Source: Geosiphon pyriformis uo1 (lineage: Eukaryota > Fungi > Glomeromycota). Taken from it: DNA of 64,000 nt. The stretch lies in assembly GCA_016748015.1 (NCBI GenBank), contig JAAOMT010000523.1, forward strand, positions 618,156 to 682,155. Reading direction: 5' to 3'. The notes beneath the pieces are model-generated. The model had not been told where the DNA came from. It saw only the letters and a list, made by a program, of their open reading frames with translations, and did not search any database. The position numbers and the translations under genes are program-made. Below are positions 1 to 52,700 of this stretch, piece by piece (position 1 is the stretch's first letter; the number at the start of each line of letters is the position of its first letter).

Positions 1-1
1 G

Positions 2-652
2 AGCATGGTTTTCGATGGAATAAAGAAATTGAATAAAGGTGAAAAACATTTGAAGATTACTTGTGACAATGCGGGTGGTCAAAATAAAAATAATGCTACC
101 ATTTGATTTTATCTGTATTTAATAATTTGCGGTTATTACGAAAGTATCGAATTAAATTTCATGGTACCTGGACATACCAAATTTAAGTGTGATGGTAGTT
201 TTGGATTGATTAAAAAGCTTTATCGAAAAACAACAGTAGATTGTGTGGATCATATTGTTGAAGTTGTGAAAAAATCAAGTACAGCGGGATTAAACAAAGC
301 TCAGTGCTATGAAAACGGCAAAGGCTTTCAATACTTAGATCTTAATTCCGTGTTGGGAATTTTCTTTAAGAAATTGAGTGGTTTACAAAAGTATCAGCAT
401 TTTCTATTTGAAGCAGCTAACCCTGGCATTGTCAAAGCTCAGCTGGTTGCTAAAGGTACTTATAGTGAATTTAATTTGTTAAAAACTAAAAAAGCAAGTG
501 TTTCTGAAATTACCAAAGAAATTAAGTCCTTTTCAATCCTAGTACTAACCCCTCCTTCTTTGGATGACAGAAGGCAAGAATACCTTTATCACAATATTCG
601 TTCATTTGTTCGGGATGAATTCAAAGATATCACTTGTCCAGAACCAATCTAA
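2..652 (+). CDS. 5'-truncated DDE/DDD transposase-like protein (DNxxGQNKN...GHTKF.CD family); open from the window edge if TGA=Trp
   Basis: Frame from nt 2 reads ...ITCDNAGGQNKNNATI[TGA 104-106]FYLYL...NFMVPGHTKFKCDGSFGLIKK and continues into ORF 161..652. The only interruption is one TGA at a Trp-compatible position. CpGs are retained. Confidence 0.7.
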
Positions 653-703
653 TCTACACTGCCAATAAATAAAACATATTTATATTACCAAAGCTGTAGA
701 AAT

Positions 704-1699
704 ATGAATAATCAAAACAAAATTGATTCCTTTTACACTCTTATCAAAGAACAAATCAAACTCAAAGGGAGAGAATTAAAAATTATTTGTGATTGAGATG
801 AATGTTTACAAAGCAGTAAACCTTTTTTGTTGTGAGAAACGGAAAAGAAAAATTTTTCTTTTAAGGATTATTTTAAAAGATTTTGAAACAAAGCTAAAAT
901 GCCACTTATAGTCTTAAAGATCATGGCTCAGACATTAATGCTGATGTAATAAATTTATAAGAATGATCTTACATTGATAAAGATGATCCAAATGAGAAGA
1001 CAAATATTCAAAGATTAGCTTCTGGAGAATTAAAAAGAATTAGAACAAAACAAGAAGAGCAATATTATAGTAAACAATTTTTTTTTTATGATTGTTCTCT
1101 TTTTTTGTCTATTGTTCAAGGATTATTGCAAGCTTTAAAAAAAGAACTAATTAGTGAATTAGTGATTATAACTGCTTTTAAAAAAAAAAACACTCTAAAG
1201 ATTATCTAGTGGAGAAAAAAAAAAATTTGGCAAAACTTGAGAACAATTTTCACAAGCCAAAGTTGATTTTATTAAAACTAAAATTGTTTTAGAACAAGAA
1301 TTAGTTCAATCTATAAGATAAAATTATATTAAAAAACATTATTTCAATTTTGATTTATATATTAATAACTATCTCTTTTTACTTAAAAAAACTAATGAAC
1401 TTATTCTTAACAGTTTTTATGTATTATCAAATTTTGCTTGTAGTAGATATCTTTAGGCTTCTAATATTTATCATTTTGAAACTAATGCTATTGGTCTCAA
1501 AAATAAAAACTTTGTTATTGCTATCTTAGAAATGAAAAATTACCAGTTAAAAAAAAAGCTAAAATCTCTGCAAACACAAAAGAAAGACAGCTGAGTTTGT
1601 TGGATGGTAATTAATAAATTACTACTTTTTTTTTTAGTTGTTTTAATAGTTAAAATTATAATAGTAATAGTTCAGAAAAAAGGTTTTAGAAAGAACTAA
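704..1699 (+). pseudogene. Code-4 (Mollicutes-like) HAD-superfamily hydrolase with C-terminal membrane anchor, decayed in its 3' part
   Basis: ATG at 704: MNNQNKIDSFYTLIKEQIKLKGRELKIICD[TGA]DECLQ gives an hhhDxD HAD motif I. In-frame TGA at 794, 833 and 884; later TGA at 964 and 1592. FDLYINN near 1350-1370 may be a decayed IDD motif. Ends in a hydrophobic run (LLLFFLVVLIVKIIIVIV) then KKGFRKN-TAA (1697-1699). Frameshift near 900 and TAA/TAG stops downstream. Confidence 0.6.
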
Positions 1700-4600
1700 A
1701 AAACTATAAGCAAAACAATAGCAAAGATCAAATCAAGCCATTATTTTTCATTCTTTTTGGTAAATTTTATAAGTAATTTTTTTTTTGTTTAAATATTTCT
1801 TAAGAATTTTGGTATTATTGATTTTAAAAATATATAAAGCAATTTTTTTTTCTTGAGATTTTTTAGAATGCTTCTAATAGTGCTGTACTTCTTGAATTCT
1901 ATAGTAGATTTAATGTAAATTAGTTTTATATATTTTATTTTTATATAGAGATAATTCTATATTAATCCTGTTATGATTTATATTTATCACATTCTGGTAT
2001 AATAAAGTGAGTATTAAAATTAACAAGTTTATAAGTTATAAATAAGCACTATTATTGTTTTTTAAAATATTATCAATCATACTGGTCAATTTCATAAAAT
2101 TAGTCTCTTATTTATATTATATAATCAAATATTCACTTTAACTGGTTTTATTGCAGCATGCCTTATATAATATTAATCAAAAAATCAACAAAATTTTATT
2201 ATTGTATTTAATTATAATAATAAAATTTTAATTTTCAATTATTAACAACATATTTATTTATTTAATTTATATTGTGAATTGAGTTTTAAATGAATTTTTT
2301 TCAATTAATTCTATAAATATTAAATTAATAAAATATATGTTGATTTGTATAATTAAAATTAATAAGTTTTATTTGCTATATTTGGTGTTTAATAATGACA
2401 AAAAAAATTTTATTTAAAATTCATAATATTTAAAATCCAGTTCTTTTGATACTTATTTTACATGATATGAAACTGAAATGGTAAAAACTCTGACCTGTTT
2501 TCTGGTTTTCTTCTTATATTGTAGTCTTGAAATGTTTGACTTTTAACATCTTGAATAAAAATGATTTAAGAGAATAAAATATTATACATAAATAGTAAGT
2601 AGTACTAAAAAATACCAAATAAGACTACATGACTCTCAAAAAAAGATCAAAGTTCTATTAAACAATTTTTGGTGAAAAATATTCCAGCCCTATTTTCACC
2701 TTTGTGAATTAAAGTTTCAGTTCTGCCAGTTATACACCTTTGATCTTTATATTAGCTATAAGTTTTGGATATAAAAACTTATTTTGAATAACAATACAGA
2801 TTTCTAATTCCTTAGTCTTGGGTAATTAAAAGTAAATAGAAACAATAATAAGCCAAAAAAACATTTCTGAAGTCTTTTTTTCATTTTAAAATTTGTCACA
2901 TCTAACACCTCAAAAGTGAAATGACAATTGTTACAAGTGAAAAATAAGATTGTTTTTCTGTTAATTCTATTCTGTAGACACACAATCTGGGTTTTGAGTT
3001 TCTTATGCTTTAAAATAGAGACAACCAGTTTATACAGGCAAACAATTCATCCAATATTAATCTGAACAAGATTATATTTAATAGTAAACTTTAATATTCT
3101 CAAAAACCAACAAATAAATGTTTTTCTAAAAGACCCAAAACAAGTTTACAGCTCTATTCATACAATCTCTATTAATTCTGATGTTTATACATACTCTAAG
3201 AATGGATAAAATTGGCTCTGTTATTATTGTTTTTATACTTAGTGTTAAAGTATAAAGGCCATAGCAGCATTTATTTTTATTCTTAAAAAAAAAAATTGAA
3301 TTAAAAAAATTTAATCCTAGAAACTAATTTTACAAATCATAATACTTTAATGCAAAAACTTACATAACTATAATGTATTGTGCTGTAATCAATAATATTA
3401 GTAAAACTGTAACTTTGTAAGATGGCTTTACAGATGTTTTTGTTGAAACATCTTAAGCTTTATTTATTTATTTTCTGCCATTTTGCTTAAACATAATACA
3501 ATACTCTTTGTTTTATTTCACTATGATATTAAAAGCAAATTTCAATCATTATTGTGAAAGCTGTTTTTAAGTGTGATTAGAATACATCATGATCAACAAA
3601 GTGTAGTTGAAAGTTTTTTCCAAGTATTATTACTTGTTGTGTACTGTTGTTTTGGTTTTTAAATAACACTTTTTGTTTGTTGTAATACTCTCTTCTATAC
3701 TCTTAGATCTTAAAAGTGAAAACAGTATTAATGGTAAAAATATCTTAAAAAAATTCATACTTGTTAAAGAGAACCATGAGTTTTGTAGAATAAAAATTTA
3801 TTGGAGAGGTTAAAAGCAAGCAAAAGACAATAACAATATGTAAACACAACTTCTGAAATTACTTAGCTTTAAGTCACAGTCATTTAAAATTAACACCTAA
3901 GCTATTGTTCTTAAAAAGTTTGTTGGTAAAGATCAAGAGAAGCAACTTTTGTCATCAGAGATTTTTTTGTTGCTTGGTGTTAAAAACATAAACATAGAAG
4001 TGGTTTTTTTTGATAGTAGAAGTAATAACAGCATTAATCAAAAGTTATTTTGGAAAAAAAATAGAAGAGCAAAAAGAGGTACAGGTATTTATTGTCATGA
4101 TTTTGAACCTAATATCAATATTTTATTAATAGATATTACTCAATAAAAAATAACAGCTGATAATAACACAATTTTTATTTATCAAGCAATAAAGTATCAG
4201 AAATTCTCAGAAAAAAATATTATAAAATTGTTTATTAATGAACAGAATAGCAAAAAAAATGTGAATCTATGTTCTAAGTATTTTAATAGAAAGTTAAAGT
4301 TCATTAATATATAAAAAATTTTCTTGGTTATATCAATATTAACAGATAATAGCATATTAAATCCAAAACAAAAACCAAATTATAAAATACAATTATGTTT
4401 TCTTACAAACAGAAAAAATTTTCACTTTGTATAAGTATAGCCAATTGTTTATGGATAATCAAGATATAAATCATTTCAAATCAATCATGTTATATGTAAA
4501 AAAAACAGTGAAAAATTGGCAATTTTAATAGTTTGAGAAACTGCAATACCAATAGAGTACATCTAGTAAATAACTTTTTTCAAAAAAAATCAGACATTTG

Positions 4601-4884: not shown

Positions 4885-7800
4885 TTTTGTTAACCATGTT
4901 AATGCAAGATTTTGACATGTTCAAAACAACATTTTTTCAATATTCTAGCAATAACAATAACATTAATTGTCTGTTAACTAGCTTTACCACTATTAAGCAA
5001 GATAATACTAAAGCAATTACTACTTATTTAGAACACTTCCACAGGAATCTGCACCAAATTCAAGTAATTAAAGCTAACTATTTTATAGCACCACAAAGCT
5101 TGAATTAATTTATTTGTGGATTATACAACAGTTTGTTACAACAAATATGTCCAATATACCTAAATACTTTTCAAGATACAGTTACACATGTCAGAGATTT
5201 TAAATTGGCCAAACTCAAAGCCAATCATATGCAAGCCATAAATCTAGTTATAAACAGATTATTTAAATTGGATTTTAAGCTAAAACAATTTAATAATTCA
5301 ATCAACCAAAAATTAAAAGAATATTTAATTAACAATTAAACAATCTATTAATCTTCTTAATATTATAACAATCTAAGAAGTTCAAGTTGCTTTCAAAATT
5401 AGCCACATTTATCATCATTATTATCAAATCAACTATAACAACAAAAAATATGTAATTGCTATTATTGTGATAAACAAAACTATCTAAAAGCAGATTATCA
5501 CTCCAGATTTAATAACTTATAATTAAAAAACCAATATAGAAGCCTTAATTACAGGTTTTAAACTCAGAACTATATCAACAATTTATTATTGGAATCATAT
5601 TAACCCTATTATACACTAATAATATAACAACTTATATATATACTTCTAATATATCAAATTTTAGCACCAGTAATTTATTAGCCACAGTCACAAATAATTT
5701 ATCAATCTTAACAAATTCAAACACCATTCCAACATACTGTGCCAATATTAACCAAAAACCAAAAACTGAGAATTATGCATATCTAACAAAACTAAAGATC
5801 AGCAATGATAATATATTAACTAATCTCTAGTTTATTAAACCAGCCATTAGAATTATGCCAATAGAGTTCAAAAAGTAGGTATATTCAAAATCCAAATTCT
5901 TAGAACTATTGAAGTCTACTAGTAATTCCAGAAATTATAACACCCAAATTACTAGAAACCAATTTAATACTACTTACTAATAATATCTCACTAGTAATTA
6001 TTACAGAAGACAAATTACTAACTACTATCTTTCTATTTGAGTTGGAAAACCAATCAGAAATTCTGTTATTTAATAGAGTCATTTTTAATATCAAACTTAT
6101 TATCATTATATATATTAATGCCAAAGTTAATGGCCAATCTATTAAACTAATCTTTGATAGTAGATTAGTAAACAGTATCATCATTTAACAACTTATAGAC
6201 CAATTAGATTGTTGAGTTGATTATATTGCCAACACCAAAATTATTATAGCTGATAAAACAACTAAAACTCTTATTGGTAAAATTAATAACTTCTCTTTTA
6301 AAATCAATGATATTATTACACTTATTAAAGTTTTTATCATAGAAGCCACACAATACCAAGTTTTTATTGATAATAACTGGCTGTTTAAGACTAATGCCAT
6401 ACTTAACTAAAATACTTAAGAGCTATAGCTTAGTTAAGATAATCAGTATACGCAGATACCAGCCATCTGCAATTATTTCAAAATAACTCAATTACAATCA
6501 TTAATAAAATTTAAAAAAAAATAAACAAACTTATTTAAGAAGCCTATTAAGTTTTATGGGTTAACAATAATCATAATAAACTATTATCAATTCTATTTTA
6601 GAATGACAAAGAAAAAAAAAAATGAATTTTAAACCATCATTTTTACTGAAAAAACAAATAATAATTGGCATATTTTATACTTAACAGAATCAAGAAAAAA
6701 ACTATTTTATATTTTTTTTAGGTGTATTAATTATAAAAAAAGCTTTTTTTTATGAAAGCTTGAATATTGCCTAAAGAAGACTATTATATATGTATTTGCT
6801 ATTATTGTAAAGTATGCTACCAAAAATGCTTTAGTTATTTAAAATGACAAAAAAAGTGTGACAACAAATTATGTTTCACTTATGGGAAAACAATACTTAA
6901 TAAAAGAATATGGAATGACATTTCTGGTTAAAAAAGAATATATAACACATTGTATCAATATACAATTCTTATAAGCGACTGAATAAGTTAAAAAATGTCT
7001 TTTAATGTTATGTAGAACTGAACACTTTTGTATTTGAATAGTTATTTATATAATAAAGATAAGATTTGAAAATAGCAAATGCCAAAATTAAAGGCATTTT
7101 ATCCAGTAAAATACTTATCATAAAAACCAATCCACCAGAATCTATTAAAACTATTTTCATTCTAAATCTAGACATTTTTGTTAACATTCTGAGCAATTCA
7201 AAATAATTCTACAAATACTACCAAGATCTAACATTTACTTGAAAAAAGCAAAAACAATATTTAGAACAATTAAACACTAGACTCTATAAATATTGTCTAA
7301 TTCTTAGTAACTTTAAATATTGTGATAATTGTGATCTTATTTACAATTTATTATTATGTATAATCTATTTAATTCCTGAAAAAAAACCAATTAACAATTG
7401 TACTTTAGAATTAAAATTAAAATTCAATCATAATTCAGACTTTAACAATAACAACAACAATAATTTTAACTTTATTCATAATGGCAACAGCAGTAATAAT
7501 AATCTAAATCTCAATTCTAACTCTAAACAATATATTGTACTTTCAAATTTTTTAATAAAGCAGAAACTTAAATAGTTCAACAATAATGATAAGAATATTA
7601 TGCCAAAATGATTATATAATACTAATGTAGAGTTTAATCTCAGATATCCAGGAAAAATTGTCATTAGATTGGAACTTCATTTGCATACTAGTATAAATTT
7701 AAAAATAGTACTGGAAATTTCAACAACAATAATTCAATTAGCATTTAAATCTAATTTAGCAAAAAAAAGATCAATATTAGAAAAAAAATAATTAACACAG

Positions 7801-10460
7801 AATATATAGAAAATATTATTACAATGTTACAAAATAAATCAGAAAAAGCATATATTATTAAACCAAATAAAAAAATAGCACAGACAATATTCCTATCTCT
7901 AATAAAAATAACTTAATTAATGTTAGTAAAAATAAAAAAAAGTTAGAGATTACAGCAAAAGAAATAAATAGATTTGGATCTATGAATAAAATAGAAATAA
8001 CAGTTAATATGACAGAAGAGAAAATAATTAATAAGGGAGAAATTATTTTTACCAATCAATCTATTTCTATTTTATCATATGATCAGCATATGTTAACTAT
8101 AGAAAGAAAAATAAAGAATCAACTCCAAATTTTTGAAATAAAAGCTACTATTTGTAAATCAGGAAAAATTGTTATTACCAATCTATATATAGCAACCAAA
8201 AACTATAAACACATTAAAATCTCAATATACAATATAACTGAAGACTTTATAAAAATACCAAGTTAAATTATTATTGAATATTTAAGTACTCAAGTTAAAA
8301 ACCAACCACCAATCATCATTTCAGACTTTTATAATTATGTAAATATGTGAACATCATATTACAGACCATATACAGACAAAAAAAATATTATTTGCTATAA
8401 TTAGAACAATTAAAACAAATAAACTTGGAAAATTTAAACCCATTTTAACAAATACAACTTAAAATATTGCTCAACAATTTTACTGATGTTTTTACAAGTG
8501 AAACCAAATTTGGCTGAATTAACATCATTCAACACCAAATTAAAACTGGAAATACAATGTCAATTAAACAATAAACATACAGAGTACTATTAATTAGCCA
8601 CAAAATTACTTGACAAAAAATCAACTAAATATTAGACAATAAGTTAATTCAATTATTAATAAGTCTATGGTTTTTATCAATAATATTTGTTCAGAAAAAA
8701 AATAGAAAAATCTGCTTTTGTGTAAACTACTGAAAACTTAACAGTATTATTTGTAAAGATAGTTATTCAACTTTATGGATCCAAAAACTATTTGATGCTT
8801 TTGAAAAAAAAATAGTTTTCAATATTAGACTTAAATAGTGATTATTAACAAGTAGTCATAAATTCAGTTAACAAAGAAAAAACAATATTTACTATCAGAA
8901 AAAAGAATTTTAAATTCGACATTATGCTATTTGATTTAACTAATATTTCAGCCACTTTTCAATGACTAATAGAAATTGTCTATACAGAATTACTATAGAA
9001 ATTAGTAGTAATTTACTTAAATAACACCAATATGTTTTCCAAGACATTTGATAATCATCTTTATTATCTTTAGTAAGTATTTGAAAAGTTAAAAAAAGCT
9101 AAATTAAAACTGAATATAACCAAATACTTTTTTGAAAAAACCAAACTCAAGTTTTTAAAATATGTCATAAGCAAAAACAGCATAAAAACAGATTTTGATA
9201 AAATTGAAATAATTAAGAACTTTCTAGTACAAACAAACTTGATAGAACTAAGAGTATTTTTGAATTTACTAGATACTACTGTCATTTTATTTAAAACTTC
9301 TTCAAACTGGCTTAATCATTTTACCAGCTCCAAACAAAAAACATTAAATATGAATAAACTAAGACTTACCAAGAAGCTTTTAACATCTTAAGAAAAAAGC
9401 TCATTTAAGCTCCAGTATTAATTTATTCAGATTATAGTAAGTTATTTATTGTTATTATTAATGCATCAGATCAAGTTTTGAGAGCTGTTATCAAAGGTTT
9501 TTGGTCTCTTTTCTTGAATGTTGTTAATGTTTGTTTGCTGTGAATTTATGTTCTCAAGAAGTAGTTAAATCTTCAATAACTAAATTTATTTTTAAATTAT
9601 CTCTTATAATTTGAACTACTGGACTTATAAGTAGAATGGCCAATTTTATGCCAGTTACTTTATGTAGTTATATTGTAGTAAACATTAATTTTTTCTTAGA
9701 AATTGTCTGTCTGAAAGCTTACTAAAATATGTAATTACTTTGCTATAAAAGTCAACTTTTCTACAGAAATTTTGTCTATAGGCTACCTTAATAATTATGA
9801 TAAAAAAAGAAAAGAAAAGAAATATAAAAGAAATATAAAAGAAATAGAATTTTGTCAGAAGAAACGTTTTCTATTCAGGCCTGGAATCACTAACAAATTA
9901 CTGAAATTGGTAGCTAATTAATTTCAAAATATTAGTTGTGTTAAGAAAATTTCAAGTGTAATAATTAAGGATTTGGTTTTCAAATATTTAATTTTTATTT
10001 AAGATGTGTAAAAAATAATTTGTTCTAATTAAGATATCTAAAGTAAGATACTATAGTAAGATATATTTTCTTGAAGAAAAAAGCTTTTCTTTTATACAAC
10101 TTGCTATAGTATTAGTTTTTGAATTTGCACTTTTCTCTTTGCTTTAATTTCGGCAAACTACAAGTTATTTCTATAAACTATTGATTATTTCGGCCAATTT
10201 CTGCTAATTTCGGCAAATTTTTGAATATTAAATGGTTTAGGGTATTGTGTAATTTGATCATCTTAATTTCTATGATACAAATCGGGTTATTAATTGAATA
10301 TTAATATTTGATAATTTGATTAAATAATAAGTAATAATCAAAATAATAATAATATATACTAATTAATAATAGGAATTATGAGGGTAATTTCATGCTAATT
10401 AATAGCTAAAATTTTATTAATAACAGAGTTATATTATTACAAAAAAAATCAGATAAATGA
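4885..10460 (+). mobile_element. Ty3/Gypsy family A copy A (5'- and 3'-truncated: gag-PR-Cys domain-dUTPase-RT-start of RNase H)
   Basis: Gag (SNNNNINCL..TTIKQ; RDFKLAKL), protease remnant (LIFDSRLVNSII ~6150), dUTPase remnant ~7600-7985, RT remnant ~8500-9300. RNase H is interrupted by a solo LTR at 9486-10425 and ends at copy B. Confidence 0.9.
9486..10425 (-). repeat. Solo LTR, family B
   Basis: TGTTA...TAACA termini. Reverse complement of the LTR at 61215-62174. 4-bp TSD GAGC/GAGT. Host RNase H sequence resumes at 10426. Confidence 0.9.
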
Positions 10461-11334
10461 TGTTATTTATAGAAAAATACAAAGAAAAAAAGCTGAAAAA
10501 ACAGAATAAAAAAATAGACTAATAAGAAAATAGTATTTAACACATGAGCACAATATCAAAAACTATAATATATTGTTCAGCAATATGCATAGTGCTAACA
10601 AATTAGAGCATACTGCTCAACAATATGAGCAATATTAGTAAATTAAAACACATTGCTCAAGAAAATGTGAGATCTCATAAAACAAAAAATAGATATATAT
10701 AGCAAGAGTATTAGAAGCAGAAAAAGCAGAATCCATCTTAAAATTAATATCCACAATTAATTAATTATCTCATATTTTTTCTTTTAAAAAGTAGTTTTCT
10801 ACAACTTAAAGTAAAATCCAATTACATATCAATAAAATATCTATTATTACCTGAATTTATGTTATTGTCATTAATTAAAAAATATTAATCATCTTTATTC
10901 TATTAACATTCTATATTAATAGAATCCAATACTTGATCATATTGAAACAATAGCTCTTGATTATGACTATTAATAAAATTTTTATTTTTTTTATTTTTTT
11001 TTATTTTTTTATTTTGTTTCTTTGCTGTTTACTAAATTGATTCAAGAATTAATGTACAGAGTTATTAATATCAAAAAAAACTGGTAAAAGACCAAAAATA
11101 AGAATAAAAACTCAGAATTTGAGAATAGCTTGCCAAAAAAAACTAGCCATCAAGCTGAGAAAGAAATTCACAAAATATATTTTTAAGAGAATATTGAAAC
11201 AACTATTGAATTTTTGTCTATTATATAAAGGACTCAACCAAAAACTTTCAGATATTATTAATACTACCAAGTTATTAAGCACCAAATTATGGATTTGTTA
11301 TTTGTATCAATAGACCAAATAATCATTTGTAATA

Positions 11335-11353
11335 TTTGGTGCTTTTTGTGAGG
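11335..11353 (+). promoter_or_regulatory. Primer binding site (family A consensus TGGTGCTCCCTGTGAGG)
   Basis: Starts 2 nt after the LTR end with TGG. The same site is seen on the minus strand at ~41106-41124, ~47852-47870 and ~58858-58876. Complementary to a tRNA ending ...CCUCACAGGGAGCACCA (Met-elongator or Ile-UAU-like; identity inferred). Confidence 0.8.
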
Positions 11354-14300
11354 TATAATCTAACAGAAAACTAATACCAGCAACAATTATCTAAAACAGT
11401 AACAGAATTAGAAAAAATAGAGACAAATCACTTGAAATTTATGAAAACTTTATTCCAACACTATTAAATTCATTTCAGATTAACAAGTAATCATTAACCA
11501 GCAAAATTAATTTTCAATTTTTATGTTAACAAAAGGATTAAATCTTACTTAGAAGACTAAAAAAATTCAGAAGCAATATTTAACAACTTCTATAGTAAAT
11601 TACTTCAAAGTATTACACTTTCACAAAATCATTTGTTTATTTCAATAATTACAGAAATTAACAGAGAAATTAAGAAACACACTAGACAACAATTTTCTAT
11701 TATTTTTGCAGATAATGAAAAAAAAATTACAAACATCAACAAAAACACTAGAAAAAATACAACTACTTATTTAAAAGAAACCAATAATTGTTTTACTTAT
11801 TTATACATTATATCATTAGATGTCTGAAAATATTATCAATATACTATTAAGAGTCATATTATTATTAGCAAAAACATCATTAGCAAGAATAATGTTCCAA
11901 AGCAAACAAAAAAAAGCCGATTTATTAAGAACTTATAACAATTTTTTTGAAAAATTTAAATTGCGATCACTAATGTCATCAGAATTTTGATTACCATTAC
12001 TTCAACCCAATTTTGAAGCCACTAGTTTTTGAGAAAAAACTGAATCAGAAGAAAAGAAAAACAAAAATTGAGAATTTAATTATCAAAACCCAGAAATTCA
12101 AACCCTAATTGTTTCAACCCAGCAAAACCAAAACAATCCAAATCTCATGCTTATTGTTTTTTAAAACTTATTGCCAGTAATAATAATCAATTCACCACTA
12201 ATTGTACCAATTGCCAAACAACAACAACAGTCATAACACCCACTTCAACCACAACTACAACAATCAATTCTAGTACCAATGGCATACACATTTATTGTAA
12301 AATTGGAAAAATTTTCAGGTAAAGAAAACAATGCCTATATATGGTTAAACAATTTTATTAAAGCCATTATTACCAATAATTGGAATGATGCTAGAGCTCT
12401 TTAAGCCATCCCATATTTTTTCCAAAAAACTACCAACTCATGGTATTAAAGCTTAATTCAGAAACCCTAAATCTTTAATGAGTTTAAAGTTGAATTTTTG
12501 AGATATTTTAATAACAATAACAGCATTAATCACCTTATAACTGTCTTTACTACCATTAAACAAAGAGACACTGAAGCAGTCATTACTTATCTAGAACACT
12601 TCTACAGAAATCTGTACCAAATTCAAATTATTGACACTAATTATTTTATAGTATTACAAATTCTAAATCAGTTTATTTACAGTCTACACAGTAGTTTTTT
12701 ATAATACATATGCTTATTATATTTACAAACACTTCAAAATACAGTCACACACACCAGAAATTTTGAATTGGCCAAGCTAGAAGCTAACTATATTCAAGCC
12801 ATTAATCTAATAATAAGTGAATTATTTGACTTGGACTCTAAGTTGAAGCAATTTAGCAATTCCATAAATCAGAAAATTAAGAGATACTTAGCTAATAATC
12901 AAGCAATTTATTAGTCTCTACAATATCACAATAATCAAAGAAACTCAAATTATTTCCAAAATTAGCTGTGTCTATTATCGTTAATTAATTAACAATGGTG
13001 ACAAAAAATACATAGTTGTCACTATTGTGGTAAACAAAAACATTTGCAAATCAACTGTTACATTCAATTAAATGATTAATAATTGAAAAATCAATATTGA
13101 AATTCTGATTACCAATTTCAAACTCTGAATTTTCAATCAAATTAAGACTTATATTAGCCTCATTACACTCCAATGATGTAATAAATAATATATTTACTAC
13201 CAATTTATTAGACTCCAGCATTAGTAATATATCAACAACAGCCACAGATCATCTATTAACTTCAACTATTTTAAACATTACCACAAAACTCAGCTTAAAT
13301 AACATCCAGAAATTAAATACAGAAAATTACTTATATTTACCAAAACTAAAGATTAGCAATAGTAATACACCAACCAATTCCTAATTTATCAAACTCATTA
13401 TCAAGATCATGTCCAAAAAATTCAGAAAATAGATATGCCCAGAACTCGAATTTTTAGCACTATTTAAGTTTTTTGATTACTCCAAAAGACATCCAATTTA
13501 ATTACCAAGAAATCAACAACAAATCATCTATCAACAACATACTATTAGCCATTATTATAGAAGATAAATTATTAATTATTATATTCCCTTTCAAAATAGA
13601 AGACCTAACTAAAACACTCTTATTTAGTGAAACTACACTAAAAGCCAAACTTATTATTGCCATATATACCAATGCCAAAATCAATAGCCAATCTATTAAA
13701 CTAATTCTTAATAGTAGTTTAACCAGCAGCATTATTATTCATTAACTTATAGATCAATTAGATTACCAAATTAATAGAGCTGCCAGTGCCAGAATTATAA
13801 CAGCCAATAGAGCAATAAAAACTCCAATTGGCAAAATTAATGACTTTTTTTTTGAAGTCAATGGCATTATTGCCCCAATTAAAGTATTTATTATAAAAGC
13901 CATTAAATACCAAGCTCTTATTGGTAATAATTGGCTGTTTAAAACCAATACAGTACTTGATTGAAACACCCAAAAATTATAACTAAGCCAAAATAATCAA
14001 AACATTCAAGTACCAGCTACTTATGGTCATTTTAAAACCACCATTAACAAACAGCCACTAATTAAGTTTAAAGAGAAAAAAGAGAAACCTACTTGAGAAG
14101 TCTATTAAATCTTGTGGGCCAAAGACAACTACAATGAACTATTACTAATATTAGACTAAGAAAACAAAGAGAAAAAAAAGCCAAAAAAGAACCCAAAGTA
14201 ACTATCTCTATGTACATTTTATATAATAACTCTTATTTAAACTTATATTACTATTAACTTAAATTAATTTGCATTAATTGTGACAAAAAATTGTTATAAA

Positions 14301-15861: not shown

Positions 15862-16560
15862 ATGCCAAAACATGTGTATAATACTAATGTTAAGTTTGAT
15901 TTTAGATACTTAAGAAAAGCTGTTATTAAATTAAAACCACATTTGCACACCAGTATAGATTTAAAAATAGCATTAAAAATTCTGACAACAAAAATGATTC
16001 AATTATCATCTAGATCTAGTTTAGTAAAAAAAGAGATTAATATTAAAAAAGAAATAATTGATACAAGATATGTAGAAAATATTATTGCAATGCTACAAAA
16101 TAACTCAGAAAAGAGATATATTATTGAACCAAATAAAAAAATAGCACAGGCAATATTTTTGCCTTTAGTTAAAATAATTCAGTTAGTATTAGTAAAAATA
16201 AGAGAAAAGTTAAGGATTACAGCAAGAGGGATAAAAAGATTTGAATTTACAAGTAGAATAAACATACCAGTTAATATGGTAGAGGAAAAAACTATTGATA
16301 AGAGAGAAATTATTTTTACCAATCAATTAGTTTTTATTCTACCATATAACCAATATATATTAATAGTAGAAAGAAAAGTGAAAGACCAGTCTCAGATTTT
16401 TAAAGTAAAACCAACTATTTGTAAATCAGAAAAGATTAAAATCACCAATCTCTACATACCAGCCAAAAACTATAAACACATTAAAATTCTCATCTATAAT
16501 ACAACTGAAGATACTATCAAAATACCAAGTAGAACTACTATTAGATACTTAAACATTGAA
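15862..16560 (+). pseudogene. dut: Retroelement dUTPase plus downstream degenerate dUTPase-like repeat (copy B)
   Basis: Motifs across copies: DVGFDLKYP / AGFNLKYP (motif 1), LASRSSL (2), IIDAGY.GNI (3), EKIAQAIF (4), TARGI.RF (5). These are followed by ~100 aa ending IKIPIYNxT...IKIPxxTTIGYL. Confidence 0.9.
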
Positions 16561-17334
16561 GTTGAAAACCAATCACTAAACACAATTCCAGATTTTTCAC
16601 AACTATGTGAATATGTAAATATTATTTCACAAACCATTTATGGATGAGAAAAATATTATTTACTTCAATCAAAACAACTAGAACAAATAAACTTAGAAAA
16701 TTTAGACTTACTTCAACTTATGCAACTCAAGATGCTACTCAACAATTTTACTAATGTATTTGCCAATAAAAATAAATTTGGCAGAACTGATATCATCCAG
16801 CATTAAATCAAGACTGAAAATACAATACCAATAAAACAATGAACATACAGAGTACCACCAGCAAGTCATGAGATTATTTAATAAGAAATTAACAAAATGT
16901 TAAACAATAGATTAATTCAACCATTTATGAGTCTATGATCATTACCAGTAGTATTAGTCTGGAAAAAGAATAGAAAAATCTGCTTTTATGTAGATTACAA
17001 AAAGCTCAACAGTATTATTTGTAAAGACAGCTATTCAACTCCATAAATTCAAGAATTATTCAATGTATTTAGAGGAAAAAAATGGGTTTCAACATTGGAT
17101 CTGAACAGTGGTTATTGACAAGTAGTTATAAAACCAAAGAATAAGAAAAAGACCATATTTATTATGAAAAAAGAAAATTTTGAATTTAATATTATGTCTT
17201 TTGGCTTAATTAATACTTCAGCCACCTTTTAATGGTTCATGAAAATTGTTTATACTGGATTATTATGGTAATCTGTAGTAGTTTATCTAAATAACACTAA
17301 TGTGTTCTCAAAAACATTTGATAATTATCTACAT

Positions 17335-33455: not shown

Positions 33456-36400
33456 GATTTTATATTCTTTTGGTCAATTAATTTGACATGTTTGTGTTGA
33501 TGATAATGATTGGTTCTAGATCTCATGAAATCTTATCTGGTTGGACCAGTATTCTTTGTACTCCTAGTTGTAAAATATTACTGGTGAATAATAACACTAT
33601 ATAGTAATATGGTTTTAGTCAATCACTATGTGCTACTTTGGCTAAAATTTTGTTGTCCTATTTTAATTTATAAGCTCTATTTTTAAAAATTTCTTTTATG
33701 TAAAATGGTCCATTCCATTTGGGATTAAATTTTCCACTCCATTGTTTCTTTGCTTTGGTACAATATAGAAGTACTTTGTTTCCAATTTTGAATTTAACTA
33801 GTTTATTTGGTAGTTGGTTATTGTGTCTTTCTTTTTGTTTTTTTTGTGACTTCTGGATGTTATCAACTGCTCTTTGCCATTTGTTTTCTAGTGTTTCTAT
33901 TAAGTCATATGTTTTTTTCAATAATGTTCTTTGGAAATTTTTTTTTGTTATTGGTTTTGTTGGATATGTTTGTACTTTTATCTCAACTGGTAATATTGCT
34001 GTTCTACTATATACTAATTCAAATAATATTGCTTGTATAGGGTCTTGCTTTATTGTCTGATAAGCAAATAATATTGATGATATAAACAAATCTCATTTGT
34101 CCTGGTTTTTTTGGCTGATTTTGGCAATTGCTTCACACAATATTTTATTAAATTTTTCTATTAGTTCATTGGTTTATGAATGATATAATGATGATAATGG
34201 TCTTTTTATCTCAAATCTTTTACTTAATTTTGCCAATATTCTATTTACAAAGTGAGTTACTTGATTTGATAATAGTTTTTTTGGACATTAATATCAACAA
34301 ATCAAGTCTTGATAAACAAATTTGGCAACAGATTCTGTATCTGCTCTTTAAATAGCTTTTGCTTCTGGCCATTTTGTAAGATAGTCCATGGTTACTGCAA
34401 TATATCTGTTGTTTCTGCTAGTTATGGTTAATGATCTAACTAAGTCAATTCTAATGTGATCAAATAATTGTCTTATTTTGATTGGTCTTAATGATTCACT
34501 GGATTTTGTTTCTCCTCTTTTTTGACAAGCATTACAATTTTGAACATACTGAATGATGCCTGGATACATAGATGGCCAATAATATTTTTTTCTGGTTCTT
34601 TCCATGGTTGCTTCTTTGTGAAAATATTCTACTGTTAGATCTGAGTACATGTTGAACAATATTGTCTTTTTCTCTGGTTCTGTAATTACTCTGATTGGTT
34701 AATTTGGGTTTCTTTTTTCTTCTGGTAAAGTATATTTTGATGGTTGATAAAATATTTTAATTGTTGTTTTATGTAATTTTGTTCTTTTTAAGATAATTTT
34801 TCCTTGAACAATTGGGTATTTATATAATATTAGAGTTGTTGGTATTTTTGTATATTCATTTTTTGCTATATTTTTGGGTTGAAATGTTTTTCAGATTTGT
34901 CTCATTTGCAATAAGCTGTTAGTATTTCCGTTTTTTTTTTCTTTTTTGTAATGTACTGTATAATTAAATGATGAAAGTTCTATTTTCCATCTGACATGAT
35001 GATCATCTCCAAATTTTTGCTTCTGGATTGAAGTCAATCCTTTATGATTAGTATACACATCAAACTTTTGGCTCAAGTATTTCTTTTATTTTATGACTGC
35101 CTAATAGATTGCTAAGTGTTCTAATGCTGATGTTCTATAGTTCTTTTTAGCTGAACTCAAACTTCAGTTGACATATGCTACTGGATGTTCTCTTTCATCC
35201 AGTCCTCTCTGCAATAGTACTGCTCTTAATGCTTGGCCTAATGTATTAGTGATAATGACAAATAATTTGCTGTAATCTAAATACATCAACACTAGAGCTT
35301 GAATAAGCTTTCTTCTTAATATGTCAAAAGCTTCTTGTTGGTTTTTTATCCATTCATACTTGGTGTTTTTTAATTGGAGCTAGTGTAATGGCTGAGCCAG
35401 TTTAGAAAAATCTTTGATAAAGCAGTAATAGTATCTGGCAAATTTCAAAAATGCTTTAAGTTCTGTTAAATTGGTTGGTACTAAAAAGTTCTTTACTATT
35501 GCAATCTTATTTGGATCTGTTTTGATGCCATCTTTGTTTATGACATGTCCCAAGAATTTTAATTCTGTCTTGTCAAAAAAACACTTGGTTGCATTTAATT
35601 TCAATTCTGTTCTTTTTAATCTTTCAAACACTTATTGAAAATGATGTAAATAATCATTAAATGTCTTGGAAAACATATTGGTGTTATTCAAGTATATGAC
35701 TACTGATTTCTATAGCAGTCCAGTATAGACAATTTTCATGAGTTGTTGAAATATGGCAGGAGCATTTATCAAACCAAATGGCATAACTTCAAATTCAAAA
35801 TTTTTTTCTTGAGTTGTAAATACTATTTTCTTCTTGTTTTCTGGTTTTATGGCTACTTGTCAATAACTACTGTCTAAATCTAAAGTTGAAAACCATTTTT
35901 TTCCTCCAAAAGCATCAAAAAGTTCTTGGATCTTTAGAGTTGGGTAGCTATTTTTTTTGTTACTCTATTTAGCTTCTGGTAATCCACACAAAAGCAGATT
36001 TTTCCATTTTTCTTATGGACTAGTATTACTAATGATGACTATGGATTCATTGATGGCCTAATTAGCTTATTGTTAAGCATTTGATTGATTTCTTGATGAA
36101 TGATTTCATGGCTGGCTGGGAGTACTTGGTATGCTCTTTGTTTGATTGGCATTGCATCTTCAGTTTTGATCTGGTGCTGGATTATGTCAGTTCTTTCAAA
36201 TTCGTTTTTACTGACAAAGATATTATTGAAATTGTTGAGTAATATCTTAAGCTGTATATATTATAATGGGTCTAAATTTCCCAAGTTTATCTGTTCCAAT
36301 TGTTTTGGTTGAAGCAGATAACATTCTTCTCATCTATATATTGTTTAAAATGTAATATGTAAATATCCACACAGTTGTGGAAAATTTGAAATAGAGTTTG

Positions 36401-37349
36401 GTAATTGTTCTTTAATTTTGGTGGTTAAATATCCAATGATAGTTTTTTTTGGTATCTCAATGATATCTCCCATGTTGTTGTAGATGGGAATTTTTATGTG
36501 ACTATGGTTCTTGGCTAGTATGTATAGATTAATTAATCCAATCTCTTTTGATTCATAAAAAGTTGTTTCTGCCTCAAAAATCTGAACCTGATCCTTTACT
36601 TTTTTTTCTATGACTACCATGTACTTGTTATATGATAAAATAAAAATTGATTGACGAGTAGAGATAATTTCTCTCTTGTCAATAATTTTTTCTTCTGCCA
36701 TATTAACTGGTATATTTATTCTACCTATTAATCTGAAACTCTGTATCTCTCTAGCCATAATCTTTAATTCTTCTCTTTTTTTCACTGCCACTAACTGAGC
36801 TATTTTTACCAGAAGTAGGAATATTGCCTGTGCTATTTTTTCATTTGGCTCTATGATATAAGCTTTTTCAGAGTCATTCTGTAGTATTACAATAATGTTT
36901 CCTACATATCTTGTATTAATTATTTCTTCTTTGATGTTGATTCCCTTTTTCACTAAACTACTCTTAGATGCTAGTTAAACTATTATTGTTGCTGGGATTT
37001 CCAGTGCTATTTTGAGATTAATGCATGTGTGCAAATATGGTTCCAATTTGATAGTGTTCTTTTCTGGATATTTTAGATTAAACCCAGCATTAGTATTATG
37101 TACATATTCTGGCATAATATCTTCATTATTATTGCTGAACCATTTAAGTTCCTGCTCCTTGATGAGATCAAAAAGTGTGATAAATGTTTCAAAATTTGAA
37201 TTAGAGTCCAAATTGTTGTTATTTTCATTGCCATTTTGAGTGGAACTGAAACTGTTGTTTTCATCATCATTATTGTTGGAGTTTAAATTAGAATTGAAAA
37301 TTGATTCTAATTCTGATGCACAGCTGCTAATTGGTTTTTTTTCCTCTGG

Positions 37350-49732: not shown

Positions 49733-52700
49733 TGTTACAGGTGATTATTTGGGATCTCAAATCAAATAGCAAACTCATAACTTGGTGCTTGGCTGATCTT
49801 CTGGTGTTGATATTTGAAGGTTTTGTTGTAGAGTTTTTTGTATAATGAACAGAAATTTAATTGATGGTTTTATCTGTAGCTTCCCAAAACCTCAGTTTTG
49901 TCAAATTTTTTTCTTAGCATGATGGCTGGTAATTCTCTTGGTAAGCTATTCTCAAATCTATGAATGTTGTATCCTTGTTTTATAGGTCTTTTACTAGTTT
50001 CTATGACATTTGTATTTCAGCGCTTAATCCTTAATAAATTTAGTAAAACCAAAGAAATAACAAAAAGAAATAAAAAAAAATAAAGAAATGAGTAAAAGCA
50101 ATTACAAGTTAGTATCCTGTCAATAGCTGTGATCAAAAGCTATTGTTCCAGTGTAGTTAAGTATCAATTATTATTAACATGAAGTGTTGATAGTAAAGAG
50201 TGGATTGAAATAGGGAATAATTATTTATTGATATTTGTGAATAGAAGGTTGTTTAGATCAGATCTAAACTGGGAGGTCTGTCTTTTCTACTTCTAATACT
50301 ACTGTTATATATACATAAATAAGATTCCTCAATTCCTCAATTTTTTACACCAGGAATCCTGCAATTTTTTTTGAAAAGAATCCTAGAATTCTAGAATTCT
50401 GTGATTCCTTGTACAAGAATTTTGAAATTCCTGGAATCCTGCAATTTCTCTTGAGCGGAATCCTGAAATTCTACATTTACTATGGCTATTTTTAATTGGC
50501 TAATTTATGTGCTAATATACTTTCTATATTTTATGAATAACATTATTCTCTCCTTTTAATATTGAGCTTTGTCAAGATCTCTTAATTCTAATTCTCTGTT
50601 GTTAAGTATTTTTTGAACTTTTTTTTCAAAAATTATTTGTGTTATCTTGTTCTGTAACTCTTTGAATTGGACATTGGTTATTCTTCCTATTTGGTTAATA
50701 GTGATGTCATCCATTATTGGATTAAGTAAGATTTCTGGTTGGTCTTAAAATCCAGCATGCAATCGATAAATAGCTCTTGCTTGTGTTGTTAGATTGTTCT
50801 TTTCCACAAATTTCTTCAGTTGTTGTAGTATTGTGGTATCAAATAATTGTTTTGTTTTATCTGTGTATAAATTCTGAATATTCAAATGTTGTCCCAAGTG
50901 AAAATAACAAAAGTTTCTTGGAAATTGTTGTATTTACTATATTCAAGTTTTTTTAGTTACTTCTTAATATGTGATAATACTTGTTGGCTCTTCTATTGCC
51001 AATTTTACTTTCAGAATTATTTTTTCAATAGCATTTTTTGTTTTCTTCTGTACTTTGTATTGAGGTATTTTTCTGGTATCTCTGTATCTAATAGTTTGTT
51101 GATTGATGGTAATTTCTATATTCCATTGTTGAATTAATTGAAAGAGTTGTTGAGCTAATGAGTGAATGTCATTGGTAATTTCTATTTTCTGATGTCTTTT
51201 GTTATGTATATCATGTCTTTATATAATCTTTTGGTTGTTCAATTTTATGTGTTTGGTTCAATGATTATAATTGGTTTTAGATCTTGTGGAATCTCATCTG
51301 GTTTGACTAGTATTCTCTGTACTCTTAATTGTGGAATATTACTGGTAGATGATGATGCTATATGGTAATATTGTTTCAGTCAATCACTATGTGCTGCTTT
51401 GGTTAAGATTTTGTTGTTCAATCTTTATTTATAAGCTCCATTTTCAAGAATTTTTTCTATGTGAAATAGTCTATCCTATTTGGGGTCAAATTTTCTACTC
51501 CATTGTTTTTCTACTTTGGTATAATATAGAAGTACTTTGTCTCCAATCTTGAATTCAACTGGTTTCTCTGGTAGTTGGTTGTCATGTCTTTTTTTTTGTT
51601 TTTCTTGTGACTTTTGGATGTTATTGGCTGCTCTTTACCATGTGTTTTCTAGTGTCTTCATTAAGTCATATGTTTTTCTCAACAATGTTCTTTGGAAATT
51701 TTCTTCTGTTATTGGTTCTGTTAGATATGTCTTGACTTCTATCTCAACTGGTAATGTTGCTGTTCTATCATATACTAATTTGAATGGTGTTGCTTGTGTA
51801 GTGTCTTGCTTTATTGTCCAATAAGCAAATAGTACTGATAGTATAATCAAATCCCATTTGTTCTGGTTTTTTTGGCTAATTTTGACAATGGCTTTACACA
51901 ATGTTCTATTAAATCTTTTAACTAACTCATTTGTTTGTGGATGGTATGGTGATGATAATGGTCTTTTTATTTCAAATCTTTGACTTAATTCTGCCAATGT
52001 TTTATTCACAAAGTGAGTTTCTTGATCTGATAGTAGTTCTTTTGGATATCTGTGTTGACATATTAAATCTTGATGAACAAATTTGGCAACAGATTCTGCA
52101 TCTGCTCTTTGAATGATTTTTGCTTTTGGCTATTTAGTAAGATAGTCTATGGCTATTGCAATATATCTGTTGCCTCTACTGGTGATTGTTAATGGTCCAA
52201 CTAAGTCAATTCTGATGCAGTTAAATGGTTGGCCCACTTTGATTGGTTTTAATAGTTCACTTGGTTTTGTTCTTCCTCTTCTCTGACAAGCATCACAATT
52301 CTGAACATATTGAATAATGTCTGGATACATAGATGGCCAATAGTATCTTTTTCTGGTTTTTTCTATAGTTGCTTCTTTATGGAAATGTCCTGTTATTAGA
52401 TCTGAGTGCATGTTGAACAATATTGTCTCTTTTTCTGGTTCTGTGATTACTCTGGTTGGTTGATCTAGATTTCTTCTGTTTTTCTGGTAAAGTATATTTT
52501 AATGGTTGATAAAATATTTTGATTGTTGTTTTATGTTGTTTTGTTTCTTTTGAGATAATTTTTCCTTAAACAATTAAGTATTTATAAAATATTGGAGTTG
52601 TTGGTATTTTTGTATATTCATCTTTTGTTATATTTTTGGTTTGAACTGTTTTTAGATTTGTCTTATTTGCAACAATCCATCAGCATTTCCATTGTCTTTT

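Follow-up and report, generated by a model that had tools for sequence, protein, structure and literature searches.

Transposons and the transfer of DNA from endosymbionts to their hosts are both well known. In transfers such as those of Wolbachia in insects, or of mitochondrial DNA into the nucleus (NUMTs), bacterial-code DNA decays in a eukaryotic chromosome. Here, we analyzed 64,000 nucleotides of Geosiphon pyriformis uo1 (assembly GCA_016748015.1, contig JAAOMT010000523.1, positions 618,156–682,155 of the forward strand). This whole stretch is called the window in the following and is numbered from its first nucleotide; it begins with part of a transposon in which TGA stands for tryptophan. 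The locus resembles the transfers named above in that bacterial-code DNA decays in a eukaryotic chromosome, but it differs from them as a discrete transposon with dozens of independent insertions, common to fungal orders and under selection in an alternative code. An initial annotation, made from the letters of the DNA alone, had supposed a Glomeromycotina host with Mollicutes-related endobacteria, and Geosiphon is a known carrier of these. Gene exchange between such endobacteria and their fungal hosts has been reported, according to a citation in PMC5982333. In a non-exhaustive search of the full-text literature, no paper was found on nuclear transposons under selection in an endobacterial code.

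The first of the two genes of the transposon, open reading frame (ORF) 1, belongs to the Pfam family DUF7869 (PF25273). Over 3,000 members of this family are found in public data, including some from animals and bacterial chromosomes, and the family is widespread in Glomeromycotina. DUF7869 elements of Rhizophagus irregularis, R. clarus, and Gigaspora (e.g., GLOIN_2v1484099, 660 aa) are of equal length, multi-copy, and nuclear, with ~40% identity and the common motifs C-x-C-x-C (N-terminus), HxSxDxAQ, DNxxGQNKN, and GHTKxxxD. The R. irregularis copy, however, is an intact intronless ORF of 660 codons in the standard code with TGG only, whereas the clade of the window uses TGA for about two thirds of its Trp codons. 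An insertion sequence of Candidatus Moeniiplasma is TGA-coded like this clade, with ~52% protein identity and a related terminal sequence (ATATG.G.CAT...). In contrast to the nuclear elements, with their fused ORF1 and an additional ORF2, it consists of one gene of about 1.85 kb with a −1 frameshift and lies in a bacterial chromosome. The DUF7869 elements of other bacteria (Desulfocicer vacuolatum DSM 3385, Desulfobacterium, and Thiomargarita) are also multi-copy and 32–38% identical over the catalytic half, but form a distant outgroup with standard bacterial code usage. A Desulfobacterium chromosome of 7.85 Mb contains seven DUF7869 matches, one of them partial, so the family is not eukaryote-specific. 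The matches in true bacterial chromosomes are the loci L063, L065–L068, L085, L088, L099, L101, and L111.

TGA as a tryptophan codon in a nuclear repeat family

Positions 1–2164 of the window belong to a single copy of the ~3.3 kb transposon and cover its 3′ two thirds. Frame 2 of the forward strand is open at 2–649 except for one in-frame TGA (104–106) and is terminated by TAA at 650–652. After a spacer of 51 nt, a second frame on the same strand starts with ATG at 704. It contains in-frame TGA codons at 794, 833, and 884, is free of TAA and TAG up to 947, and shows all stop types thereafter, up to a terminal TAA at 1697–1699. The N-terminal ~370 codons of this ORF1 lie upstream of the window. 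The initial annotation had described two co-oriented intronless frames 51 bp apart, interrupted by nothing but four TGA codons up to nt 900. Both observations were confirmed: the frames (2–649 and 704 onward) are two genes of one transposon copy, and four of four stops being TGA is beyond chance (p about 0.002, given the stop spectrum of decayed copies). CpG dinucleotides, described as plentiful up to nt 900, are so in positions 1–650 (11, observed/expected ratio 0.64), but only one was found in 651–946, and none in 947–2170. The proposed junction with retroelement DNA was also correct, as the flank consists of decayed retroelement DNA with dUTPase and integrase remnants.

The first 1,000 nt of the window matched at least 43 places in the assembly (128.3 Mb, 792 contigs) with 70–97% identity, spread over many contigs with lengths of up to 2.7 Mb. 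Full copies elsewhere in the assembly were used to define the element upstream of the window. The copies are homologous from ~1,126 nt before window position 1 to about 2165–2177. The unit comprises ORF1 with about 585–610 codons and ORF2 with about 326–346 codons, in an operon-like layout: intronless, with the ORFs 51 nt apart and two or three in a row. Several nuclear copies (L031, L039, L040, and L044) are fully intact in genetic code 4, in which TGA encodes Trp. Among 32 nuclear copies, the highest identity of any pair was 95.2%; the ratio of nonsynonymous to synonymous substitution rates (dN/dS) of that pair was 0.11, and its differences were mostly synonymous. The CpG observed/expected ratio was 0.6–1.4 in intact copies, 0–0.2 in decayed copies, and 0.08 in the flank of the window copy.

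For codon analysis, ~40 copies were aligned to a stop-free guide protein with X at stops. Translation in code 4 was restricted to trees, dN/dS, and codon counts; searches were run with stop-free pieces or database proteins, and TGA was represented by X in query proteins. The five Trp sites of ORF1 had TGA 77 times, TGG 48 times, TAA seven times, and TAG not once; both TGA and TGG occur at every one of these sites, depending on the copy. The 11 copies without any non-Trp stop, with 473–585 aligned codons each, contained 36 TGA in 6,085 codons. The stops outside Trp positions in decayed copies were TAA (66), TAG (32), and TGA (27). Each of the four TGA codons named above corresponds to TGG or TGA in other copies. 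Specifically, the codon at 104–106 in the DNA alignment of 39 copies was TGA in 23, TGG in six, TAA in one, and TAG in none, and the ORF2 codons at 794 and 833 are TGG in L031. Homologues checked at the TGA positions had Trp or an aromatic residue there, as the initial annotation had expected. In a set of 46 distant full-length homologues, 40 had W at site 212, site 312 was occupied by F or Y, and site 403, which corresponds to window nt 104, was W in nine and Q in 22.

Pairwise dN/dS values among 14 copies (91 comparisons) ranged from 0.03 to 0.2, with dS from 0.18 to saturation. TGA accounted for a share of 0.64 of the Trp codons, and A-ending codons of Lys, Glu, Gln, Leu, and Arg for 0.61–0.80 in the same genes. 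The corresponding values for Moeniiplasma chromosomal genes were 0.74 versus 0.72–0.83. Both ORFs terminate in TAA, that of ORF1 at the same position in the other listed copies, and TGA does not act as a terminator. TGA and TGG are interchangeable Trp codons here, and the proteins are under strong purifying selection. Because the TGA share matches that of synonymous A-ending codons, TGA carries no cost for the element relative to TGG. Nonsense mutations passed on by descent, an artefact of mutation, and inefficient read-through are all excluded. We are highly confident that this is a nuclear multi-copy transposon that is coded with TGA as Trp and is under selection. In the public Geosiphon gene models P0007 and P0009, invented introns skip the TGA codons or fragments were fused, and the annotated proteins are artefacts.

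Genes, window copy, and nuclear surroundings

Positions 107–649 of the window matched DUF7869 with 36.1 bits (gathering cut-off 26, E 6.2e-9), and PF25273 was present in all close relatives. Sequence searches of PDB and NCBIfam with ORF1 yielded no match. An AlphaFold model of the relative P0227 (mean predicted local distance difference test score 89) was compared by Foldseek, and the top matches were IS21 IstA, TnsB, and retroviral integrases (E 6e-4 to 1e-2, probability ≤0.98). Although these solved DDE enzymes (IS21 IstA, Tn7-like TnsB, and retroviral integrases) are the best structural matches of the model, they have no detectable sequence similarity, and TM-scores were 0.2–0.5 since the core alone aligns. 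The model indicates that ORF1 is probably a DDE-type transposase with an RNase-H-like core. Three aspartates, D311, D390, and D432 (P0227 numbering), are invariant in 48 sequences and are candidates for the catalytic residues.

ORF2, an accessory gene, differs from subfamily to subfamily. Versions intact in code 4 have 346 codons in L008 (6 TGA, 1 TGG), 310 in L005 (8 TGA, 0 TGG), and 326 in L031 (3 TGA, 6 TGG). The pieces of ORF2 matched no Pfam family, and no homologue was found in Rhizophagus, Gigaspora, Ambispora, or Moeniiplasma loci.

The features of the window are summarized in Table 1. The window copy is a mosaic and dead under any code. From nt 1 to ~820 it resembles a young subfamily, and from nt 947 to 2164 an older lineage (83–87% identity). 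The GC content drops from 33% (1–650) to about 20% (947–2170), and the excess of G>A plus C>T changes relative to L002 within 947–1699 was 81 against 18. The combination of a young 5′ part with an old, decayed 3′ part suggests that copies of unequal age underwent recombination or gene conversion.

Table 1. Features of the window (positions in nt; strand given where assigned).
Feature	Position	Strand	Basis or remark
ORF1, C-terminal 216 codons	2–649	+	Pfam PF25273 match; aligns to family reference ORF positions 369–584
In-frame TGA, ORF1 Trp site 403 (GQNKNN..I-W-FYLYL)	104–106	+	DNA alignment to 39 copies
ORF2, accessory gene	704–1699	+	Readable with TGA as Trp at 704–946; TAA, TAG, and TGA stops from 947
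Three in-frame TGA of ORF2 (794–796, 833–835, 884–886)	794–886	+	Trp positions D-W-DECL, LL-W-E, RF-W-N
3′ non-coding end of the element	1700–2164	+	Homology among copies stops at about 2165–2177
Inverted copy of subfamily left-end motif (TATATAGGATTA...)	1941–1962	+	Inner inverted repeat seen in L005
Decayed right terminal inverted repeat	2127–2164	+	Same right end in L039, L040, L044, L031
Young CpG-rich part of mosaic	1–946	+	95–97% identity to L004, L007, L017, L018, L027, L028 over 1–710/823
Old part of mosaic	947–2164	+	Zero CpG, GC 19–22%, transition excess
Flanking nuclear DNA	2165–64000		AT-rich, CpG observed/expected 0.08, remains of long terminal repeat (LTR) retroelements
dUTPase ORFs, LTR-retroelement remains	15862–16647; 36345–36953		Domain match
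Integrase core ORF, LTR-retroelement remains	51635–52009		Domain match

The element is probably a DNA transposon of the terminal inverted repeat (TIR) type. Perfect TIRs of 45 bp were found in the relative L127, and a 41-bp pair in L056. In the subfamily of the window copy, the left end is unlike the family TIR, and an inverted copy of that left end lies inside the element. No clear target-site duplication was detected at the ends of L056, L127, L039, L040, and L044; the flanks are A+T-rich. The L127 member (6320–13915) spans 7.6 kb and carries extra genes between its left end and ORF1, among them a Crinkler-domain gene, typical of these fungi. A tRNA-Gly(GCC) gene (L035:3139–3209) lies ~150 nt past the right end of one copy.

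In the host, the beta-tubulin genes contain introns and spell Trp as TGG; the single stop codon checked was TAA. Similarly, an ORF beside one copy, resembling those of long interspersed nuclear elements, has nine TGG and no TGA. A search of the assembly for bacterial-grade 16S gave no match with a stricter filter, which makes this result a floor. None of the 43 matches was located on C703, the contig with mitochondrial-type rRNA.

Relatives in fungi and endobacteria

Trees were quick maximum-likelihood reconstructions with Shimodaira–Hasegawa-like approximate likelihood ratio values as the sole support measure. The TGA-coded clade was well supported, with the standard-code Rhizophagus/Gigaspora clade as its sister, and splits into a Moeniiplasma-type subclade A and a nuclear-type subclade B.

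Subclade A contains copies in metagenome-assembled genomes (MAGs) of Candidatus Moeniiplasma glomeromycotorum (proteins P0285 [MCE8163216.1] and P0373 [I3273_07265]), the soil-metagenome contig L056, and a 4.8 kb Ambispora contig. One Moeniiplasma copy, on a contig of 124.8 kb, has TIR-like ends, with restriction-modification genes of type III on one side and of type I on the other. It contains five TGA codons, four of them at the five Trp sites of ORF1, and a second copy is present on another contig. Restriction-modification genes flank this sister clade alone (L125 and L126). Between the TIRs of L056, every cargo ORF is in code 4; TGA must likewise be read as Trp in a short ORF of the flank. 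The cargo ORFs at L056:2834–3733 abut without gaps, and one has an HExxH motif (HELTHAL); another, of 796 codons, has eight TGA, two TGG, and a faint Lon_C match. In all three members, the transposase consists of two frames that are joined by a −1 shift; the conserved A10 at which this happens lies in L125 (10020–10045), L056 (1445–1460), and L055 (1380–1395). Judged from the sequence, this shift in the endobacterial-type copies looks like programmed frameshifting or transcriptional slippage, a trait of bacterial insertion sequences.

In subclade B, ORF1 is fused and the A10 site is replaced by the in-frame sequence TTATTAAAGAAG...; the position of this site is upstream of the window. Members are the Geosiphon nuclear copies, copies in Ambispora leptoticha and Diversispora eburnea, a Gigaspora rosea protein, and many metagenome contigs with flanking ORFs in the standard code. 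The TGA-coded clade is present in DNA of nuclear type in several arbuscular mycorrhizal fungi. Intact copies of A. leptoticha and D. eburnea share 86–88% DNA identity with Geosiphon copies, and such identity across fungal orders implies horizontal spread of one shared pool. In L128, L130, and L131, TGG is the sole Trp codon of the ORFs upstream of ORF1 (kinase-like in L128 and L131), whereas TGA is used in the ORFs downstream of it. On the reverse strand of the metagenome contig L117, positions 3–911 hold a standard-code ORF that resembles TnpB/Fanzor and has a zinc-ribbon motif; it is ~4 kb upstream of an intact TGA-coded element.

The initial annotation had taken the locus for endobacterial DNA in the host nucleus. 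Its genes do read TGA as Trp, and a relative does reside in a Moeniiplasma chromosome; the DNA is, however, a discrete transposon with at least 43 dispersed copies and probable terminal repeats of its own. The search for Moeniiplasma homologues, which had been recommended as a check, recovered the sister clade in a bacterial chromosome but not the nuclear clade itself. As the sister clade alone was seen in bacterial chromosomes, the endobacterial origin of the window copy is a point that we infer.

Site of expression and alternative explanations

We consider the following account, taken as a whole, to be reasonably probable. The element would be translated, and hence kept functional, inside endobacteria that read TGA as Trp. 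Transposase-bound element DNA would then escape to the fungal cytoplasm and insert into nuclear chromosomes, where a copy could not be expressed and would decay via CpG loss and A+T drift. Each nuclear copy would represent a separate arrival from a diverse endobacterial pool, and not the product of a nuclear copying burst. A nuclear burst would leave near-identical copies with neutral differences. The lack of any nuclear pair more than 95.2% identical, together with the dN/dS of 0.11, suggests that the copies were independently sampled from a selected pool outside the nucleus. Endobacterial expression is further supported by the matching code, the sister lineage in Moeniiplasma chromosomes, the operon-like, intron-free layout, the pool common to fungal orders, and the contrast of CpG-rich intact with CpG-stripped old copies.

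Several observations weigh against expression in endobacteria. No subclade B copy was found beside bacterial genes in the flanks of L117, L127, L128, L129, L130, and L131. The neighboring ORFs in L117, L127, L128, L130, and L131 are in the standard code with TGG only, and the Ambispora copy L129 sits in AT-rich, CpG-depleted DNA. The GC content at third codon positions (GC3) of subclade B ORF1 was 0.27–0.42, compared with 0.30–0.40 for host tubulin and 0.21–0.26 for one Moeniiplasma MAG, and failed to discriminate host from endobacterium. Subclade B also has no counterpart of the A10 −1 frameshift site, which is conserved in the endobacterial clade. Among species-representative bacterial genomes, a collection that does not include the element-bearing MAGs, a profile scan returned 55 loci, none of them in Mollicutes, and a single-protein scan found nothing. 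Furthermore, no route is known by which a bacterial transposase–DNA complex could enter the nucleus.

In a rival account, the element lives and transposes in the nucleus, and the fungus reads UGA as Trp via a suppressor tRNA or other recoding. In its favor, there are dozens of nuclear copies, several of them intact in code 4 (L031, L039, L040, and L044), and intact copies adjoin standard-code ORFs in four other contigs; GC3 is nearer to that of host genes than to that of Moeniiplasma genes, and the fused ORF1 lacks the bacterial-type frameshift site. Decoding by the host would, however, face 3–8 UGA codons per ORF in no common leaky context (those in the window are followed by T, G, G, and A), so that near-cognate read-through would give almost no full-length protein. 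As TGA has no selective cost compared with TGG, decoding would have to be efficient. Yet the element contains no tRNA, no suppressor tRNA was found in nine full elements or in the window, and a partial search with a tRNA-Sec model gave tRNA-Ser and tRNA-Leu only and no UCA tRNA. The polycistronic layout is ill-suited to eukaryotic translation, and the near-identical copies expected from nuclear bursts were not seen. We regard nuclear life with host decoding as unlikely, albeit deserving of some weight, and a hidden cytoplasmic UGA-to-Trp route in Glomeromycotina, with a dedicated tRNA or factor that these transposons alone exploit, as distinctly unlikely. Alternatively, A-to-I editing of UGA to UGG could restore Trp in nuclear transcripts, which would account for the tolerance of TGA alone. 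Stop-correcting editing of this kind is known in some ascomycetes. Known fungal editing favors A after U (UAG), yet TAG never occurs at the Trp sites, and the Moeniiplasma chromosomal copy has the same TGA usage with no need for editing. RNA editing is therefore very improbable in our opinion.

The remaining explanations have a slim joint probability. The code-4 genes and the relative in the Moeniiplasma chromosome would fit a single, NUMT-like nuclear integration of a piece of endobacterial chromosome, but at least 43 copies with common termini and differing flanks, the absence of an adjacent bacterial housekeeping gene, and a flank of CpG-depleted retroelement DNA render this highly improbable. 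All copies are broken in the standard code, and TGG to TGA is a single transition, as would be expected if they were ordinary pseudogenes with meaningless nonsense mutations from a dead master copy. Against this, TGA occurs at different Trp sites in different subfamilies, the equally reachable TAG was never seen, dN/dS is ~0.1 across TGA-containing copies, and TGA is as frequent among Trp codons as A-ending codons are among their synonyms; we give pseudogenes hardly any credence. The same minimal credence applies to an assembly chimera or endobacterial contamination: the fungus does harbor endobacteria, but the copies lie inside contigs of 0.2–2.7 Mb with many independent junctions, old copies carry host-type CpG decay, and no bacterial 16S was found in the assembly, a floor given the stricter filter. 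Fungal mitochondria use code 4 and would read TGA as Trp. We nonetheless give expression in this organelle equally little credence, as none of the 43 matches is on C703, no relative was found in an organelle context, and the known relative is in Moeniiplasma.

If expression in endobacteria followed by nuclear insertion is the correct account, these elements would naturally carry DNA between bacteria and fungal nuclei, as well as from one fungal order to another. This would supply a mechanism by which Mollicutes-related endobacteria and arbuscular mycorrhizal fungi could exchange genes, as has been reported, and would account for some of the repetitive DNA in these genomes. Should the fungus decode the elements instead, one nuclear genome would operate with two codes. 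Public gene models that splice around the TGA codons, such as P0007, are wrong at these loci in these fungi.

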